Shown here one piece after another: positions 49,798-62,725 of a stretch of DNA of 64,000 nt. The DNA is from Podarcis vaucheri. Lineage: Eukaryota. The first letter of the stretch is position 1. The number at the start of each line of letters is the position of its first letter. The position numbers and the translations under genes are program-made. The stretch lies in the NCBI GenBank assembly GCA_965113315.1, contig OZ220364.1, one strand, 5' to 3'. The notes beneath the pieces were generated by a model. It saw nothing but the letters and a program-made list of their open reading frames with translations, made no database searches and was not told the origin of the DNA.

Positions 49798-50256
49798 TAG
49801 GGATGGATGAGGGAGAAGGTAGGCTGTCTGGGCTGAAAGGTGAACCTCCCTACTTTGCACTTCCCCAAAGCAGTACACAAGACAGAAGCACAGTTATCCT
49901 CGAAAATCTGCACTCTCCGAATTTTCCAGTGCAGTTCTGCAGCCAAGTAACATGTACTTAATATATACAAAAATGTATATATTAGTAGAACTGACATGGG
50001 TGGTGATGGCAGGTGTGTGTGTGTGGGGGGGGGAATCCATTGTACTAGGAAAATTCCTTTGCAAAAAACCTGTCTCTTAGGCAAAACCACTTACAAAAAT
50101 GTGTCTACTAGTTGAAATTTGCACAGAAATGCTGGTGAATCTTTATGAAACCCTTTTAAAAATCACCATCATCACAAACTGATGTACAAATGTGGGGAAC
50201 AAAACATAAGATTGGAAAAATGAGAAACCTGAAATTGACATATGGGCCCATCCCTA
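49798..50256. mobile_element. Non-autonomous hAT-like element (TIR TAGGGATGG...CCATCCCTA)
   Basis: 9-bp inverted termini; degenerate 8-bp TSD (GCTCAGAT vs GCTCAAGC once the LTR element is removed). Confidence 0.6.
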
Positions 50257-50257
50257 G

Positions 50258-50710
50258 TGTCAGGGAACTGACATCGGAGGAAAGGGAAGTGGTAAGGCTC
50301 CCAGAGACTGGGAGAGAGTCAACAGCCAAAGCAGGGACCAGCAGGGGGAGCGCGGGGTCTCTGGAGGAGGATCTCAGTAATGCTGAGAGACACGCAGCAG
50401 CCCAGGCAGGAAGCAGCAGGGGAGAGAAAGGGGTGAGAGACACTTCGAGCGAAAATAGCGGGGAGGTGTCAGAAGCAACTGCCGGGAGACCCATGCTTCG
50501 CCGGAAGCTGCCACGTCGTGAGTCCAGGAGACGCGTTTCCGTTAAGGAACTTCTTTGCTGGAAGCGCTTCCGCAGACAGCCACTGTCAGACTCTACTAGT
50601 GACTAGAGCAGACATGTCTGAGGAGCTCTGTCACACACAGAGGTTTGTGGGGTCGCACAAACTCTGAAGGGGCACAATTTTAAGCACAAGCAGCTAACCA
50701 TCCCCTGACA
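50258..50710 (+). repeat. 5' LTR (453 bp)
   Basis: Direct repeat of 55377-55829; one difference seen (C50391 vs G55510); 8-bp terminal inverted repeats. Confidence 0.97.
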
Positions 50711-50712
50711 GC

Positions 50713-50723
50713 AGTCTGACAGT
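50713..50723 (+). promoter_or_regulatory. Self-priming primer-binding site (AGTCTGACAGT)
   Basis: Exact reverse complement of LTR 50582-50592 (ACTGTCAGACT); no TGG tRNA-type PBS follows the LTR. Confidence 0.8.
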
Positions 50724-50755
50724 CTCTGTACGCTGCCTGTGCAGGAGAAAGCATC

Positions 50756-51766
50756 ATGAGCAACCCAGTCGGAACCGGAGACGCAGGGGTTGGAGCTGGT
50801 CCAAGCTTGGAAGAAAGGTATCAAGCTCTGGAGGTCCAACTTGCGCTGCAGACGGCGAGGCTCGAGGAGAGAAGGGCTCAGGATGCTGACAAAAAGGGGA
50901 GAACCACTCAGTTCCCCAGAAAGGTACCAGGACTGGTGCAGAAGTTTGGGGGGGACCCCAAGGATTACCATGCCTTTAGGACTGAGATGCAATATGCTCT
51001 GAATGTGCAGTTTGATGAGTTCCCTGATGAGGAATCGCGAGTTGCGTTCGTAATTGGGCATCTTGAGAAGGGGGCGCGGGACTGGGTTCGACCCCTGATG
51101 GCAACGCACAACGATATCCTAAAGGACACTATGAAATTCTTTCGTGCAATGGATATCATGTTTTCCAGCGATATTGAGGAAGGGGTGGTACGCAGACAGC
51201 TAATGGCTTGCAAGCAGGGAAGCAGATCTGTCCGTGAGTACTGGACTGAATTTACCATGCTGATTCACAGATTGGGGTGGGATTTATCGGCGGCACCCAT
51301 TCAGATGCTATTTGAAGAAGGTCTTTCTTCAGCTGTGAAAGACGAGCTGGCCAGGAGCCCCAGGGCGGGGTCTATGGATCAGCTGACCAAATCTGCGCTG
51401 ACCATTGGAGCGCGCCAGGAGGCAAGAGCCTTGGAGAGGCGGGAAGGGAGAGGGGAACGTTGGAAGGAGTTACGCATTCCAGACATTCCTGAGCCAGCTT
51501 TCCCGCCGGCAGAGCCGATGGAAATCGGAACAGCCCGCGCGCGCGCAGTTTCAAAGCCCAGTGAGGGGGCGAAGAAGGAGGGAAAGGGAGCCCGGAAATG
51601 CTATCTCTGCCAACAGCCAGGCCACTTTGCCAGAGTCTGCCCCCAGAGGAAGGAATGGCAAGGGATGGTGGGAGCTGTTGAGGGGGAAGAGCAGGGAGAA
51701 ACGGAGCAGGTAAAAGCCAACGCCTGGTTGCCAGCAGGGCACTGCAGCCAGGCCAAAGAGCAGTGA
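50756..51766 (+). CDS. Retrotransposon Gag (capsid-like domain plus CCHC zinc knuckle), 336 aa
   Basis: ATG 45 nt after the 5' LTR; PEG10/sushi-like KFGGDP..RVAFVIGHL.KGARDW and KQGSRSVREY segments; CYLCQQPGHFARVC knuckle. Confidence 0.95.
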   Translation: MSNPVGTGDAGVGAGPSLEERYQALEVQLALQTARLEERRAQDADKKGRTTQFPRKVPGLVQKFGGDPKDYHAFRTEMQYALNVQFDEFPDEESRVAFVIGHLEKGARDWVRPLMATHNDILKDTMKFFRAMDIMFSSDIEEGVVRRQLMACKQGSRSVREYWTEFTMLIHRLGWDLSAAPIQMLFEEGLSSAVKDELARSPRAGSMDQLTKSALTIGARQEARALERREGRGERWKELRIPDIPEPAFPPAEPMEIGTARARAVSKPSEGAKKEGKGARKCYLCQQPGHFARVCPQRKEWQGMVGAVEGEEQGETEQVKANAWLPAGHCSQAKEQ

Positions 51767-51774
51767 AAGTGCCC
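51709..51774 (+). promoter_or_regulatory. Putative -1 ribosomal frameshift signal (G_GUA_AAA plus H-type pseudoknot)
   Basis: Heptamer in the gag frame, 6-nt spacer, stem 1 at 51722-51731/51744-51753, stem 2 at 51737-51743/51768-51774. Confidence 0.72.
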
Positions 51775-54700
51775 CTTCCCCAAGTGCCAGTGCCAGAAGC
51801 TCCTCGACCTGCTCTAGTGATTGAAGTGTCTCTAGAGCTGCAAAATGGACACCCCCTAAAAATAAAGGCGCTGTTGGACTCAGGCAGCTCCTGCAATTTC
51901 ATGAGCAAGGAGTTTGCTGCTGAGCACCAGATACAGACTATCCCTTTAAGCAACCCCCTGCAGGTGACCACGATTGATGGCAGGGAACTGTTGGGAGGAG
52001 GCGTCAGCTTGCAGACCGTCCCAATGATAATGAGGGTGGCAAGGCACACAGAACTGATAGCGTTTAATGTGGCCACCTTGGGAGGCGCTCCCATTATTTT
52101 GGGAATGAGCTGGCTAGCCCTACATGATCCGCTGGTGGGCTGGCATCAAAGAGTGGTTTCCTTCGGTTCCGCACACTGCTTAGAACACTGCAGGGCGGAA
52201 AAGGGGTCAGCAGGGGCCCAAGCCACCCTAGCAGGGACGGAAGTGATGGAGAAGGGGAAGGTGCCACCACAGTATGCTGATCTCAGCGACGTGTTCAGCG
52301 AGAAGGAAGCGGACCAACTACCCCCGCATAGGCCCTTTGATTGCCAGATCAATTTACTCCCTGGAGCACAGCTTCCTGTAGGCAAGTTGTATGCCATGTC
52401 AGACAGGGAGATGCAGGAGTTGCGAGCGTTCATTGACAAGAACCTGAAGAGAGGCTTCATCAGAGAGTCCAAGGCAGCGGGGGGTAGCCCAGTGTTTTTT
52501 GTGGATAAAAAAAACACGGACAAGCCGAGGCTGGTATGTGACTTTCGGGCCCTAAATGCAGTGACAGAGCCGGCGGCTTTTCCTATGCCCAGGATTGATG
52601 ATATTTTGACCAGGGTGCGAAAAGGAAAGATTTTTACAAAGCTGGACCTAAGGGGGGCGTACAACCTGATACGTATAAGGAAAGGGGATGAATGGAAGAC
52701 CACCATGTTCACCCCTTTGGGGGCATTTGAATACCTCGTTATGCCTTTTGGATTACAAACAGGCTCCGCGTGTTTTCAAGCCTTTATGAACCATGTACTG
52801 GGGCCTTTGCTCTACAAGAATTGCGTGGCCTTCTTAGATGACGTGTTGGTGTATTCGGAGAATGAGGAGCAACATGTGAGAGACGTCAGAGAAGTGTTGA
52901 GCAGGCTGCAAGCCAACAGACTGTGGGTGAAACTGGAGAAGTGTCAGTTTCATACCAAGGAGGTGGAATTCCTGGGGTACCGCTTGTCAGACAAGGGGTT
53001 GGCCATGGACCCCGGCAAGGTTCAAGCGGTGCTGGAATGGAAAACACCCAAGACCAAGAAGGATGTGCAGAGGTTCCTAGGGTTTGGAAACTTTTATCGT
53101 AAGTTCATCCGAAACTTCGCCCACCTGACGGCGCCCATCACGGACTGTCTCAGCAGCAAAAAGAAGTTTGTTTGGACGGGGGAGGCGGAGCGAGCGTTTG
53201 AGGAACTGAAAAGGGCCTTCGCCTCTGACGAACAACTTCTACATGTGGATTTACAAAAAAAGCTGAGGGTCGAAACAGACGCTTCTGACAGAGCCATAGG
53301 GGCGGTGCTTCTTCTGCAGCCGGGGAAGGAGGGGTCAGAGTGGCGACCGTGTGCCTTCTTTTCGCGAAAGCTGAACAAATCTGAGAGAAACTACACGGTG
53401 CACGACCGGGAACTTCTTGCGATTTATGAGGCCTTCCGGAGATGGAGGCACCTACTAATTGGTGCACAACAGAAGGTGCAAGTGTGCACGGACCATAAGA
53501 ATCTAGAGTATTGGAGAACTGCGCGAGTGCTCAACCAAAGGCAGTTGAGATGGGCCCAGGAGTTCTCCAAATTTAACTTTGAGATTTGTTACGTACCAGG
53601 CCCGGAGAACGTTAGGGCGGACGCTCTCTCACGCAAACCTGAATATTTGGAGGGAGAGGGTGCACCCGAAGAGACCCATGTTATTCCCGAGGACCGCTGG
53701 GTGTGTGGGGCGGCTTTGGTGGGGCAAAGGGAACTGGTAGAGGGAACGGTGCAGGATGAATACGCCCAGGACAAACTCAGGGGTCTCAGGAGGGAGGGAG
53801 ACAAACCCGGGGGTTTTGAGGAGAGAAACGGGGCGTTGTACTACAAGGGAGTGTTATACATACCTGAAGGGGAATTGAGGGAAAAGGTACTCAAGCAACT
53901 GCACGATAGCCCCACAGCAGGGCATTTTGGGCAACACAAAACCATGTGGCTGGTTACCAGGGAATTCTGGTGGCCCAAGGTCAGGGAAGATGTGCGTGAA
54001 TATGTGAGAGGGTGTGACCGATGTCAACGAGCCAAGGGGGAGAGGCGGGCACCGGCAGGTTTATTAGAACCACTACCCACGCCGGAAAGACCATGGGAGG
54101 CAGTGGCAATAGATTTCATGACTGATCTGCCCAGGTCCAAAGGGAAGACAGCCATTATGGTTGTGGTAGACCTGTTAACCAAGATGGCCCACTTTATAGC
54201 CTGCTCACATGCGGTCACAGCAGAAGAAACCGCTAAATTGTTTGTGGAAAATGTGTTTAGGTTGCATGGTGCCCCCTTGAGGGTGGTTTCGGACCGAGGG
54301 AAACAATTTACTTCCAGGTTCTGGAGGAAGCTCATGAGCTTATTGCATGTAGAGGTGAATTTTTCCACTGCCCGTCATCCAGAAACCAATGGGCAGGCGG
54401 AAAGAACTAATGGTGTCCTCCAGCAATATTTGAGGTGTTATGTGAATGACAGAGAGAATGATTGGGTGGAGAAGCTGGCGTTGGCAGAATTTGCCTATAA
54501 CAATGCAGAGAACGTGTCCACGGGGATGAGCCCTTTTTTGGCCAATCACGGGTGTCATCCCCGAGCCTTCCCAGGGGGGGAGGGGGAGAACTGGAGCGTT
54601 CCTGCCGCAGAACAGTTCGTTGAAGAAATGGAAGCGATCCATCGCCAGCTCCAACTTAATTTAAACAGGGCGAAGGAGGAATATAAGAGGCAGGCAGACA

Positions 54701-55725
54701 AAACCAGAAGGGAAGGGGAAAGCATTAGGGTGGGGGACCAGGTGTGGCTGTCCACCCAAGGGTTACCATTTAAAGGAGGTTGTAAGAAGTTAAGACCCAA
54801 AAGACTGGGCCCATTTGAAGTCACGCAACAGGTCAACCCAGTGGCTTTCAGACTCCGGTTACCGAACCACATGAAGTTGCACCCAGTGTTCCACAGATCA
54901 TTGCTGTCACCGTATATAGGGGACAGAGAGGGGAGGGTCAATAGGGGACCAGCTATGGAGGAAAAAGAACACAGCTACCATGTAGCGGAGATTCTCGATT
55001 CCAGGTGGAGGGGAGAGCAAGTAGAGTATTTGGTAATGTGGGAAGGGGAGCCGGAGTCGGAAAACACCTGGGTCAGGGCAGAGGATGTAGATGACGAGGT
55101 TTTGATTGAAACTTTTCATCAGAGATTCCCTAGAAAACCCCAGCCAGTGGCAAGGTTCCGGAGGGAATACTTCGCCACCACCGACGACGAAGAAGAGTTG
55201 GAGGGGTTCGCTGATTCCGAGGTGGAGGAGGATTCAGCGAGTCGGAACGAAGACCGATGGAGGGAATTGTTCGAGACGTCTGAAGATGAAGAGGATTCTT
55301 TTAGGGGTTTCAGCTCCTCACCGCCCAGAGGAGAAAGTAGGGGCGGGGGAGAGGGGGGCCCTGGAGGGGAGGTGGATGTCAGGGAACTGACATCGGAGGA
55401 AAGGGAAGTGGTAAGGCTCCCAGAGACTGGGAGAGAGTCAACAGCCAAAGCAGGGACCAGCAGGGGGAGCGCGGGGTCTCTGGAGGAGGATCTCAGTAAT
55501 GCTGAGAGAGACGCAGCAGCCCAGGCAGGAAGCAGCAGGGGAGAGAAAGGGGTGAGAGACACTTCGAGCGAAAATAGCGGGGAGGTGTCAGAAGCAACTG
55601 CCGGGAGACCCATGCTTCGCCGGAAGCTGCCACGTCGTGAGTCCAGGAGACGCGTTTCCGTTAAGGAACTTCTTTGCTGGAAGCGCTTCCGCAGACAGCC
55701 ACTGTCAGACTCTACTAGTGACTAG
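51763..55725 (+). CDS. Retrotransposon Pol (protease, RT, RNase H, integrase, chromodomain, acidic/basic tail); frame open from 51682, probably entered by -1 frameshift
   Basis: LLDSGS protease; MPFGL and FLDD (RT); ETDAS (RNase H); H..H..CDRC and D-D-E integrase; GPF motif; chromodomain YHVAEILDSRWRGEQVEYLVMWEG..ENTW. Confidence 0.96.
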   Translation: MKVPLPQVPVPEAPRPALVIEVSLELQNGHPLKIKALLDSGSSCNFMSKEFAAEHQIQTIPLSNPLQVTTIDGRELLGGGVSLQTVPMIMRVARHTELIAFNVATLGGAPIILGMSWLALHDPLVGWHQRVVSFGSAHCLEHCRAEKGSAGAQATLAGTEVMEKGKVPPQYADLSDVFSEKEADQLPPHRPFDCQINLLPGAQLPVGKLYAMSDREMQELRAFIDKNLKRGFIRESKAAGGSPVFFVDKKNTDKPRLVCDFRALNAVTEPAAFPMPRIDDILTRVRKGKIFTKLDLRGAYNLIRIRKGDEWKTTMFTPLGAFEYLVMPFGLQTGSACFQAFMNHVLGPLLYKNCVAFLDDVLVYSENEEQHVRDVREVLSRLQANRLWVKLEKCQFHTKEVEFLGYRLSDKGLAMDPGKVQAVLEWKTPKTKKDVQRFLGFGNFYRKFIRNFAHLTAPITDCLSSKKKFVWTGEAERAFEELKRAFASDEQLLHVDLQKKLRVETDASDRAIGAVLLLQPGKEGSEWRPCAFFSRKLNKSERNYTVHDRELLAIYEAFRRWRHLLIGAQQKVQVCTDHKNLEYWRTARVLNQRQLRWAQEFSKFNFEICYVPGPENVRADALSRKPEYLEGEGAPEETHVIPEDRWVCGAALVGQRELVEGTVQDEYAQDKLRGLRREGDKPGGFEERNGALYYKGVLYIPEGELREKVLKQLHDSPTAGHFGQHKTMWLVTREFWWPKVREDVREYVRGCDRCQRAKGERRAPAGLLEPLPTPERPWEAVAIDFMTDLPRSKGKTAIMVVVDLLTKMAHFIACSHAVTAEETAKLFVENVFRLHGAPLRVVSDRGKQFTSRFWRKLMSLLHVEVNFSTARHPETNGQAERTNGVLQQYLRCYVNDRENDWVEKLALAEFAYNNAENVSTGMSPFLANHGCHPRAFPGGEGENWSVPAAEQFVEEMEAIHRQLQLNLNRAKEEYKRQADKTRREGESIRVGDQVWLSTQGLPFKGGCKKLRPKRLGPFEVTQQVNPVAFRLRLPNHMKLHPVFHRSLLSPYIGDREGRVNRGPAMEEKEHSYHVAEILDSRWRGEQVEYLVMWEGEPESENTWVRAEDVDDEVLIETFHQRFPRKPQPVARFRREYFATTDDEEELEGFADSEVEEDSASRNEDRWRELFETSEDEEDSFRGFSSSPPRGESRGGGEGGPGGEVDVRELTSEEREVVRLPETGRESTAKAGTSRGSAGSLEEDLSNAERDAAAQAGSSRGEKGVRDTSSENSGEVSEATAGRPMLRRKLPRRESRRRVSVKELLCWKRFRRQPLSDSTSD
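55363..55376 (+). other. Polypurine tract
   Basis: GGAGGGGAGGTGGA immediately before the 3' LTR. Confidence 0.75.
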
Positions 55726-55829
55726 AGCAGACATGTCTGAGGAGCTCTGTCACACACAGAGGTTTGTGGGGTCGCACAAACTCTGAAGGGGCACAATTTT
55801 AAGCACAAGCAGCTAACCATCCCCTGACA
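55377..55829 (+). repeat. 3' LTR (453 bp)
   Basis: Direct repeat of 50258-50710, followed by TSD CCTAG. Confidence 0.97.
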
Positions 55830-58800
55830 CCTAGCTCAAGCAAAGGTTTCTGCAAAATTGTGCCATCGGGCACTACTGACATCTATACCATGCTCAGTGT
55901 AAGGAAGAAACTCTATCTGATGTATAAGAATTTTGCCAACGTTATGACTCCAATTTGTTTCAGTGACATGTGACATGTGATTTTATTGTTCATATTTGAA
56001 TGCTGCTCTTCCTCCAAGACATTCAGGCCAGCATACATGGCACTATCATCTCTTGCAATCTTCAAGTCAACCTTGTGAGGAATGTTAAAACTGAGTAACA
56101 CTCTCATGGCTGAGCGGAGATTTGAATCCAGAGTTCCTCAGTTCACCAGCTAGACTCCATTAGCTGAATTGGACAGACTTGAACACCAAGATTTCCTGCT
56201 TCTCCACAAATGCTTTTTATCTAGCAAAGTACAGCACCGACTGGGAAATTTTTGATCCCAATTTTGCTGGCATCAGTACGTTTACAGTGTTCACTGAATT
56301 CAGCGAGTAGGGTCAGCACTCAGTCCTGCCTTTCTGAGCCAACAAACCCATTCCAGGCAAGCCACCATGGAGCTGGTAGATGATAAAAGCCTTTGTCCTC
56401 ATAATGACCAAGACTAGCATTCAAAACAACCACCAGATAAATGAAAATTCATGAAGCCCTTTTATGTGAAGACCTGCTGATCTTTGGGAGCTTCCTAACA
56501 ATGGGGAGAGCAAATATATTTGTTTTGCATTTAGCTCTCAACTCACAAGATCAACTGAGCATTTGAGAAGCCGTAATGAGAGAATAACATCCAAGGCACT
56601 GCTTTGAAGTTTTCCAAATAGTCTCTCTAGGACTTAACAATCAATTTTCACAAGAAGTTACAGAAACGAAAGAGACAGCATCTCCCCCTCTCCACCCCCT
56701 TCGTTCTGTCTTTATTAACTGGATAATCTCAGATTATAGGGCTTGTTTCCCGCAGGAATGGGACTTTATGTCTTCTCTGCGTTTTCCAATTTAATTTAGG
56801 ACACAGTCTCCACTAACAGTAAATGGTGGGTCCTCCCGCACCTTCTGTACTAGGTGAAAGAAAGGGCAAATGGACCTCAGGTTACGAAGCAAAGGCTGTA
56901 GGGAAGGGTCAGTCTTGGGGCAAGGAAGAGGCCTGGAGACTGGCAGAAAGAGAAAATCGCAATGGAAGAAGGTTGCAAGCTGACCTCCGCCCAACCTGTC
57001 CAGGGCAGGGCAAGCTTCTACCAAGCCACATGGAAAAATGAGCGGATAGGGACTTTTCACGTTATGGAGACACACATCATTGCCAACTAACATCTGCATA
57101 AAAAGCAGCTGCTAAAAGCACTTCAGTGACTATTTGAAAAGGTGGCTACTGGAGGGGTGTGTGGGGAAGCTGGTGGATCCGGAGACTTTTTCTAATCTGC
57201 TACCTTTTCACACACTTCCCTTACTGCATTGTGCATGCAACACACATTTTAGCACTGTTATTTTCTGAAGGAAGTGCGGTTTAGAATCTGCGCAGCCCTT
57301 AAAAATAATTGCCTTTAACCCATCTTGGATTGAGATGGAATTGTTATCATATTGTTTCAATTTACAGTCTAACACAATGTGCTCATGATGAAACTCTCAT
57401 ATAAACCCCAAGGGATTTGCAGGAGATGCATGCTGACAGATCTGTATCTTGTAGCTTTGTTCCGAACCCTTTGTTGCTCTCCCTTGCTCCATTTGTCCAC
57501 AATCCCCTAGTACAAATTGGGTTACTCACCTATTTCCTATTGGGGACCTCTCACCCAGGAACAATACCACCATGGCCCATTTTGGCTATGAGAAACTGTT
57601 CAGTAATTTGCCTGGCTTAATGGTTAATCCAGCCCCCAGTTAGATTCCGATTTCCATCAATATATCTGATTGTCCAGGCCCCCAGCAAATGTATGTTTTC
57701 ATCAAATGCTGTGTTTTTCTTCAAATCTTTCTCAGGGAGTAGAGGTAGACATATTTATTTTTAGAAAAACTTTGAATATGCATTTGCAATTCATACACGA
57801 ACTTCTGCAAAACACTCAGATTCCTCAGTTGTCTTTGATATGTCACTAGGGAAGAGATCCCAGCTCTGCAATCACAAGGTGCAGCTGACGCTAGCACTTG
57901 GGATGTCTTTTGATAATCTCTACAGACGTGACACCTCCCCACTGCCAACAGAATTGGGTATAAATAAACTCCTGCAATCCAATGCCTCTTTGGGCTGCCT
58001 ACATGGCATGCTGAGTTCAGCAGCAAGATTCAGATGGTGCCCTGGCAATGCCATGTTGTTCAAGTCCAGCTCAAGGGTCACCTGGGAGACAAGCAATAGG
58101 GCAGCATACTCCTCAGTGCATGTATGAATCCATCCCAAATCTTCCAAACAACTGTCTGACTGATTGACTCTGGAGGAAAGATTAATGTTTCGGTTATGAG
58201 TGGATAAGTGACATAAATCATCACAGGAAACAGCCACCTAAATCTGTTGATATCACAATAGCTCTCTTGAGAACCAGAACCCACTTTAACCATGTCCTGT
58301 GATACACAACCCACTTTTCTATATTGTTGTTGTTCCTACTGCTACTACTGTATACATCTGTATACAGTAGTATACCTCTTTCCTCTTAATATAATTTGAA
58401 CATCGGGGGGGGGGGGGTAAAGTTAAATGGTGTTGGCACCACTGATGGGACCACTTGAGGTAAAGGCAAGGCCTACTTGAGAGTCCTCTTCCCCTATGGG
58501 CTGAACTACATGCTAGTTGGGGATGATAAGAGCAGAATGCTAGCAATGCCTTGAGGTCCTCAGTTTCTGCATCTTAGACCTTCAGAGTTAAATAAAGGGA
58601 TTCTCTCCAAGCTAATAGTGAGTGCCATTCAGCTGGGGCAGCATAGCCAAGAACTGGACTGGTTAGTTCTGTCAATGAGGTATGTTTCAGTTGCTGGAAG
58701 GATATCTAAATACCAGTTTCCTTCCTCCATTGCTTTGGAAACAAGAAGAAATACACATCTTTGGCTGCATGCCTTGGAAGAAGAAGAACTGAAGCACTTA

Positions 58801-62608: not shown

Positions 62609-62725
62609 GCCATAGTGGTTCAGTCGGTGGAGCATGAGACTCTTAATCTCAGGGTTGTGGGTTCAAGCCCCACGTTTGGCATTGCCTTGTGGTCCCTTCC
62701 AGTTCTACAATTCTGTGATTCTGTT
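62609..62725 (+). mobile_element. tRNA-Lys(CTT)-derived SINE with a CR1-type 3' tail
   Basis: 62609-62681 aligns to vertebrate tRNA-Lys-CTT (GCATGAGACTCTTAATCTCAGGG..GGTTCAAGCCCCACG) with a damaged acceptor stem; followed by gtcccttccagttctacaattctgtgattct. Confidence 0.8.

Follow-up and report, generated by a model that had tools for sequence, protein, structure and literature searches.

A Tf1/sushi-type chromovirus of the lizard Podarcis vaucheri with a putative self-priming site just past its 5' LTR

In the fission yeast retrotransposon Tf1, the first 11 nt of the element's RNA pair with the primer-binding site (PBS), RNase H cuts after nucleotide 11, and the 11-mer then primes reverse transcription (PMC7175516, PMC10085805). 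The Tf1 'pretzel' consists of three duplexes; its two extra helices pair sequence adjacent to the PBS with LTR sequence downstream of the primer (PMC10085805). According to PMC10085805, PMC6317226 and PMC4600332, all three citing Butler et al. (2001), self-priming is common among Tf1/sushi elements, including those of vertebrates. Self-priming is likewise treated as common in these elements by PMC7175516. Reptiles, among them Anolis and turtles, are known to carry full-length chromoviruses (PMC3670739). A literature search for self-priming linked to lizard elements found no such report. To our knowledge, self-priming has been shown experimentally only for Tf1 of fission yeast, and the vertebrate case comes from inspection of sequences.

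We analysed a stretch of 64,000 nt from Podarcis vaucheri, referred to here as the window. The window contains 587 N. A Ty3/gypsy chromovirus retrotransposon occupies positions 50258-55829, with all of its features on the plus strand. This element is complete and young, and all parts are present. Direct-repeat comparison delimits a 5' LTR of 453 bp (50258-50710), which begins TGTCAGG and ends CCTGACA (3' end ...CCCTGACA), and a 3' LTR at 55377-55829. The two LTRs agree at 452 of 453 positions, the sole mismatch being C at 50391 against G at 55510, and identical 5-nt target-site duplications, CCTAG, stand beside them at 50253-50257 and 55830-55834. Their ends fit the Sushi LTR model TGTYANR / CNTNACA (PMC3601003). 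The gag gene (50756-51766) encodes 336 aa with Retrotrans_gag and a CCHC knuckle. It is followed by pol (51763-55725), which encodes PR, RT, RNase H, integrase, SH3 (Tf2-1) and a chromodomain, and ends in a tail encoded by the 3' LTR. Both genes were recognized from ORFs and domain matches, those in pol being RVP, RVT_1, RT_RNaseH, Integrase_H2C2, rve, SH3_Tf2-1 and Chromo (E 8e-12). A polypurine tract, GGAGGGGAGGTGGA (55363-55376), adjoins the 3' LTR. An earlier reading of this DNA, made from the sequence only, had called the element an intact copy, and the nearly identical LTRs, the target-site duplication, gag and a full pol bear that description out.

The pol gene is in the -1 frame relative to gag, as is typical, but not defining, for Tf1/sushi members outside fission yeast. 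The pol frame is open from 51682 and the gag stop lies at 51764-51766, giving an overlap of 85 nt (51682-51766) in which no classical X XXY YYZ heptamer was seen on a quick reading. Among solved structures, pol is nearest to Ty3, and gag to the PEG10 capsid, which is its only solved relative. The window holds no further copy or solo LTR of the element. The 5' flank (50200-50257) is repetitive, with several contigs per run on it and small indels. The insertion probably lies within an older repeat.

Two nucleotides past the 5' LTR, after a GC spacer (50711-50712), lies AGTCTGACAGT (50713-50723). On direct reading, this 11-mer is the exact reverse complement of ACTGTCAGACT (50582-50592) within the LTR, as the sequence-only reading had claimed. 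Only one further exact copy of ACTGTCAGACT occurs in the 64 kb, at 55701-55711 in the 3' LTR. If the element is divided according to the Tf1 model, 50258-50581 would be U3, ACTGTCAGACT would be a putative self-primer forming the first 11 nt of R, 50593-50710 would be the rest of R-U5, and AGTCTGACAGT would be the PBS. The remainder of the leader, as far as the gag ATG, covers 50724-50755. It had also been stated that pairing stops on both sides of the 11-mers. Contiguous pairing does end there, with C-C oppositions at 50581/50724 and 50593/50712, but non-contiguous extensions exist. Outward, four more pairs (50576-50579 with 50726-50729) lie beyond a 2x2 mismatch, and inward, two more pairs (50593-50594 with 50710-50711) lie past a 1-nt bulge.

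A match of this kind is rare by chance at this place. We carried out 20,000 dinucleotide shuffles in which the site was allowed to start 0-8 nt past the LTR, and an exact complement of at least 11 nt arose in 0.46% of cases when the LTR was shuffled and in 0.50% when the leader was shuffled. In control windows 20-160 nt further downstream, the longest complements reached just 5-8 nt. Another internal 11-mer, at 51823, is also complementary to the LTR; over 4.7 kb, about this much background would be expected. Thus, it is the position of the site, and not the 11-mer match as such, that carries weight. The 11-mer ACTGTCAGACT has TGTCAG in common with the terminal repeat of the LTR.

Among related elements the layout recurs, with sequences that differ. 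We scanned metagenome contigs and obtained 80 related loci, of which 11 had readable LTR ends. In seven of the ten loci analysed, an exact complement of 8 nt or more begins 1-2 nt past the LTR, and its sequence is different in each. The complement measures 12 nt in L026 (LTR-internal site CAGTTCGAATAT, PBS ATATTCGAACTG) and in L040 (AGTCTGTAAATT and AATTTACAGACT), 10 nt in L014 (AGTCTGAAAT and ATTTCAGACT), 9 nt in L060 and L079, and 8 nt in L068 and L030. Complements in the fungal-type relatives thus span 8-12 nt. They are clearly longer than those of control windows (Mann-Whitney p 1e-4; Fisher combined p 4e-7). The spacers between LTR and PBS are 1-2 nt long in the relatives and 2 nt long in the lizard element. 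L014, L026 and L040 are close in the tree, yet both partners differ in concert. Such concerted differences are covariation, as is the recurrence of the layout with different sequences across the clade.

Additional loci are of the fish type. One of them, L009, has a 10-nt pair, GCTGGATTAT and ATAATCCAGC, which starts 2 nt past the LTR, and has ATTAAA near the LTR end. Another, L004, whose LTRs are 87% alike, retains a decayed match of 7 nt only. For L002, L020 and L033, the LTR ends were not definable. The fish-type sushi loci L009 (1-100 and 4361-5058) and L004 come from the same ENA metagenome assembly, ERZ506948, and presumably represent host DNA.

The placement of the element was determined with a maximum-likelihood tree from RT-RNase H-integrase, rooted at the midpoint; Tf1 and sushi-ichi were not among the sequences. 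The lizard element nests with chromoviruses of Podarcis, Anolis and Gekko, in a vertebrate cluster that also holds those of Xenopus, Ambystoma and fish. This cluster is the sister group of fungal-type and amoebozoan elements, and plant and algal chromoviruses are set apart with 100% SH-aLRT. The grouping of vertebrate with fungal-type elements corresponds to the 'fungi/vertebrates cluster', that is, the Tf1/sushi group (PMC10085805). In UniRef, relatives of pol with 91-97% identity come from Podarcis muralis.

We believe that AGTCTGACAGT is probably the PBS of a Tf1/sushi-type chromovirus that would prime its minus strand with its own RNA. Tf1-type self-priming is the best reading because the same layout recurs with different sequences, that is, because the pair covaries across the clade. 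The proposal is supported by the exact complement, its position 2 nt past the LTR, the lack of a tRNA-type site, the placement in the clade and the layout of the relatives. We infer the RNA start, the cleavage and the actual priming from this arrangement. In our model, genomic RNA would start at or close to 50582, and its first 11 nt (ACUGUCAGACU) would fold back onto 50713-50723. The RNase H of the element would then cut after nucleotide 11, between 50592 and 50593. Extension of the freed 11-mer across the GC spacer, U5 and R would produce strong-stop cDNA, and this cDNA would transfer to the 3' R. The GC spacer and then U5 would be copied because the first A of the PBS (50713) is the partner of the primer's 3' U (50592); the geometry of the LTR requires such an order.

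What priming strictly needs is the primer 3' end at 50592, not an RNA start at 50582. No TATA box is present in the lizard LTR about 30 nt before 50582. The context at this position, where the sequence-only reading had placed the start, is only initiator-like (GCC-A(50582)-CTG), and the RNA would start at or close to A50582. Fungal-type relatives do have such a box: it precedes the first primer base by about 28-33 nt in L014, L026, L040, L079, L068 and L073. This spacing fits the Tf1 rule, by which the primer would be the 5' end of the RNA. With regard to RNA 3' ends, AATAAA, ATTAAA and their common variants are absent from 50582-50710, which would span R and U5, and none was seen by eye elsewhere in the LTR. 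A GT-rich stretch (50642-50652) follows a CA-rich run.

We also folded the RNA with its start assumed at 50540-50582, the range of starts that includes the primer. The 11-nt primer/PBS pairs formed with a probability of 0.96-1.0 in all of these folds, the terminal pair 50582/50723 ranging from 0.35 to 0.96. The fold of 50582-50735 joins both 11-mers but is only modestly better than shuffles (z -1.7). When the RNA was assumed to start at 50540-50576, the helix could be extended outward through 50576-50579/50726-50729 and further GCAG pairs. The RNA start could therefore lie upstream of 50582, where pairing can go on. Beyond the primer helix, the candidate 'pretzel' helices of the lizard element are 50684-50694/50732-50742 and 50669-50673/50702-50706. 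The first of these, a possible duplex between U5 and the leader, has a dG of -18.8 kcal/mol, which 93% of shuffles equal (P 0.93); we dropped it as evidence. Flanking duplexes are significant in relatives L014, L040, L079 and L030, unlike in the lizard element.

The lengthening of the outer helix bears on the strongest competing explanation. The two 11-mers might form a long-range stem in the 5' UTR, serving packaging, dimerisation or translational control, in an RNA whose start lies upstream of 50582; reverse transcription would then be primed by another route. The additional outer pairs gained with starts at 50540-50576 favour such a stem, as does the lack of a TATA box that would fix the start at 50582. 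However, the leader of 45 nt offers no alternative primer site. Moreover, the 3' arm lies exactly where a PBS belongs, 2 nt past the LTR, and it does so also in relatives whose 5' arm is found about 30 nt after a TATA box. We therefore regard a stem of this kind as unlikely.

A second possibility is that AGTCTGACAGT binds a host RNA, such as an internal fragment of a tRNA or another small RNA, and that its match to the LTR is coincidental. Priming by half-tRNAs is known in some Ty1/copia lineages (PMC6317226). The sequence-only reading had pointed out that no TGG follows the 5' LTR, and we found none between the LTR and the gag ATG (50711-50758 scanned). Without TGG in the leader, no tRNA 3' end can pair there. 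The reading had further proposed a comparison of the PBS with tRNAs. The sole tRNA gene in the window is a tRNA-Lys(CTT) at 62609-62681, 6.8 kb downstream of the element. The best complement of this one lizard tRNA to the leader is 6 nt, and it is therefore unrelated to priming. An Rfam search of the primer/PBS region returned no family matches. A text search of the literature with both 11-mers gave, among the matches listed, only unrelated topics and nothing on tRNA. A host-RNA primer would also demand a coincidence with a probability of about 0.005, and this coincidence must recur with different sequences in the relatives. We consider such a primer very improbable. Finally, a functionless chance inverted repeat, although compatible with the second LTR complement at 51823 and with the TGTCAG that the 11-mer has in common with the terminal repeat of the LTR, is equally hard to credit given the position-specific probability of 0.005 and the recurrence of the pattern across the clade.

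The self-priming proposal can be carried further in the lizard family, which is very abundant: 1.2 kb of the element matched 5001, 1870 and 1702 Logan contig pieces in three related organisms. Four gag relatives from Logan are 79-93% identical. Exact-pattern scans of viral and metagenome contigs with the family's U5-PBS-leader gave no matches. At 50391, the C of the 5' LTR is private to it, and G is found in the 3' LTR and in nearly all family contigs. At 50483, both LTRs have C and nearly all family contigs have A. The polypurine letters GGAGGGGAGGTGGA also turn up before 50258, as loose ends of family contigs.

Within the primer itself, a T>A change at 50592 is present at 0.4-1.8% in the three organisms, and one contig of a fourth organism has it too; among the 40 of 174 variants listed, there was no partner change at 50713. 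A clipped contig of run X14, from the fourth, related organism, covers 50573-50602 and has ACTTTCGGATT in place of ACTGTCAGACT, representing a sister subfamily. This region is also read as protein at the other end of the element. The pol frame (55377-55725) continues across the polypurine tract and the whole of the inferred U3. It ends 12 nt past the 3' copy of the 11-mer, which lies within the final codons of pol (ccA CTG TCA GAC Tct = P L S D S). The three changes that separate ACTTTCGGATT from ACTGTCAGACT (CTG>CTT, TCA>TCG and GAC>GAT) are all synonymous in the frame of this pol tail. They occupy three of the four third-codon positions, for which the chance is 4/165 by our own arithmetic. 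Additionally, the end ...PLSDSTSD is retained by two proteins of Podarcis muralis whose U3-encoded tails have diverged. These synonymous-only changes, together with the kept ...PLSDSTSD, mean that the primer is also under coding constraint. We tentatively suggest that primer, PBS and pol C-terminus may be coupled, and that a ACTTTCGGATT subfamily with a matching PBS might form a compensatory series showing self-priming in an amniote, although we think it somewhat more probable that this is not the case. If the ACTTTCGGATT subfamily self-primes, its matching PBS is predicted to be AATCCGAAAGT.

The closest comparison is with Tf1 and Tf2 of Schizosaccharomyces pombe. Both have an 11-nt site just past the 5' LTR that is complementary to an 11-mer inside the LTR. 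They also share with the lizard element a chromodomain integrase and a 5-bp target duplication, 5 bp being the length of the Tf1 duplication. In contrast, Tf1 has a single ORF and a gag without CCHC, whereas the lizard element has gag and pol in a -1 frame arrangement and a CCHC knuckle. For Tf1, the start, the cleavage and the structure of three duplexes come from experiment; the lizard element is known from sequence, and its flanking duplexes do not exceed chance.

Sushi-ichi and other vertebrate Tf1/sushi elements are likewise vertebrate chromoviruses; their pol follows gag in the -1 frame, and their LTRs have TGTYANR / CNTNACA ends. Self-priming has been proposed for them from sequence, by Butler et al. 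(2001) as that work is cited in PMC10085805 and PMC4600332. The lizard element differs from them in its squamate host, its 11-mer and the pol frame that runs through all of U3. Additionally, the Sushi LTR model has AATAAA close to the LTR 3' end (PMC3601003), and the lizard LTR does not. The fungal elements Tj1, Tosmo1-3, Tcry1 and Tcn1, for which self-priming has also been proposed, resemble the lizard element in having a PBS complementary to the LTR, on evidence of the same kind (PMC4600332, PMC10085805, PMC7175516), but they have fungal hosts and lie in another part of the tree. Plant chromoviruses and retroviruses that are primed by tRNA share the layout LTR-PBS-gag-pol-PPT-LTR and the 2-nt spacer before the PBS. 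However, their PBS starts with TGG and matches the 3' end of a tRNA, and the lizard element has no such site.

In sum, position, statistics, the lack of a tRNA-type site, phylogeny and relatives all favour a Tf1-type self-priming site in place of a tRNA PBS, as the sequence-only reading had proposed. That reading overrated the novelty of the site, as self-priming is already a common feature of Tf1/sushi elements. A self-pairing PBS is an expected hallmark of the described Tf1/sushi group, and what we found is thus a real but ordinary feature. With its abundance and its clean pairing of an 11-nt primer and PBS, the lizard family contributes a case from an amniote and yields predictions that can be checked, namely an RNA 5' end at about 50582, a cut after 50592 and matched changes among subfamilies. 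It leaves beliefs about the Tf1/sushi group unchanged: the lizard element would take its place beside Tf1, sushi-ichi and their fungal relatives as one more member with this type of site.
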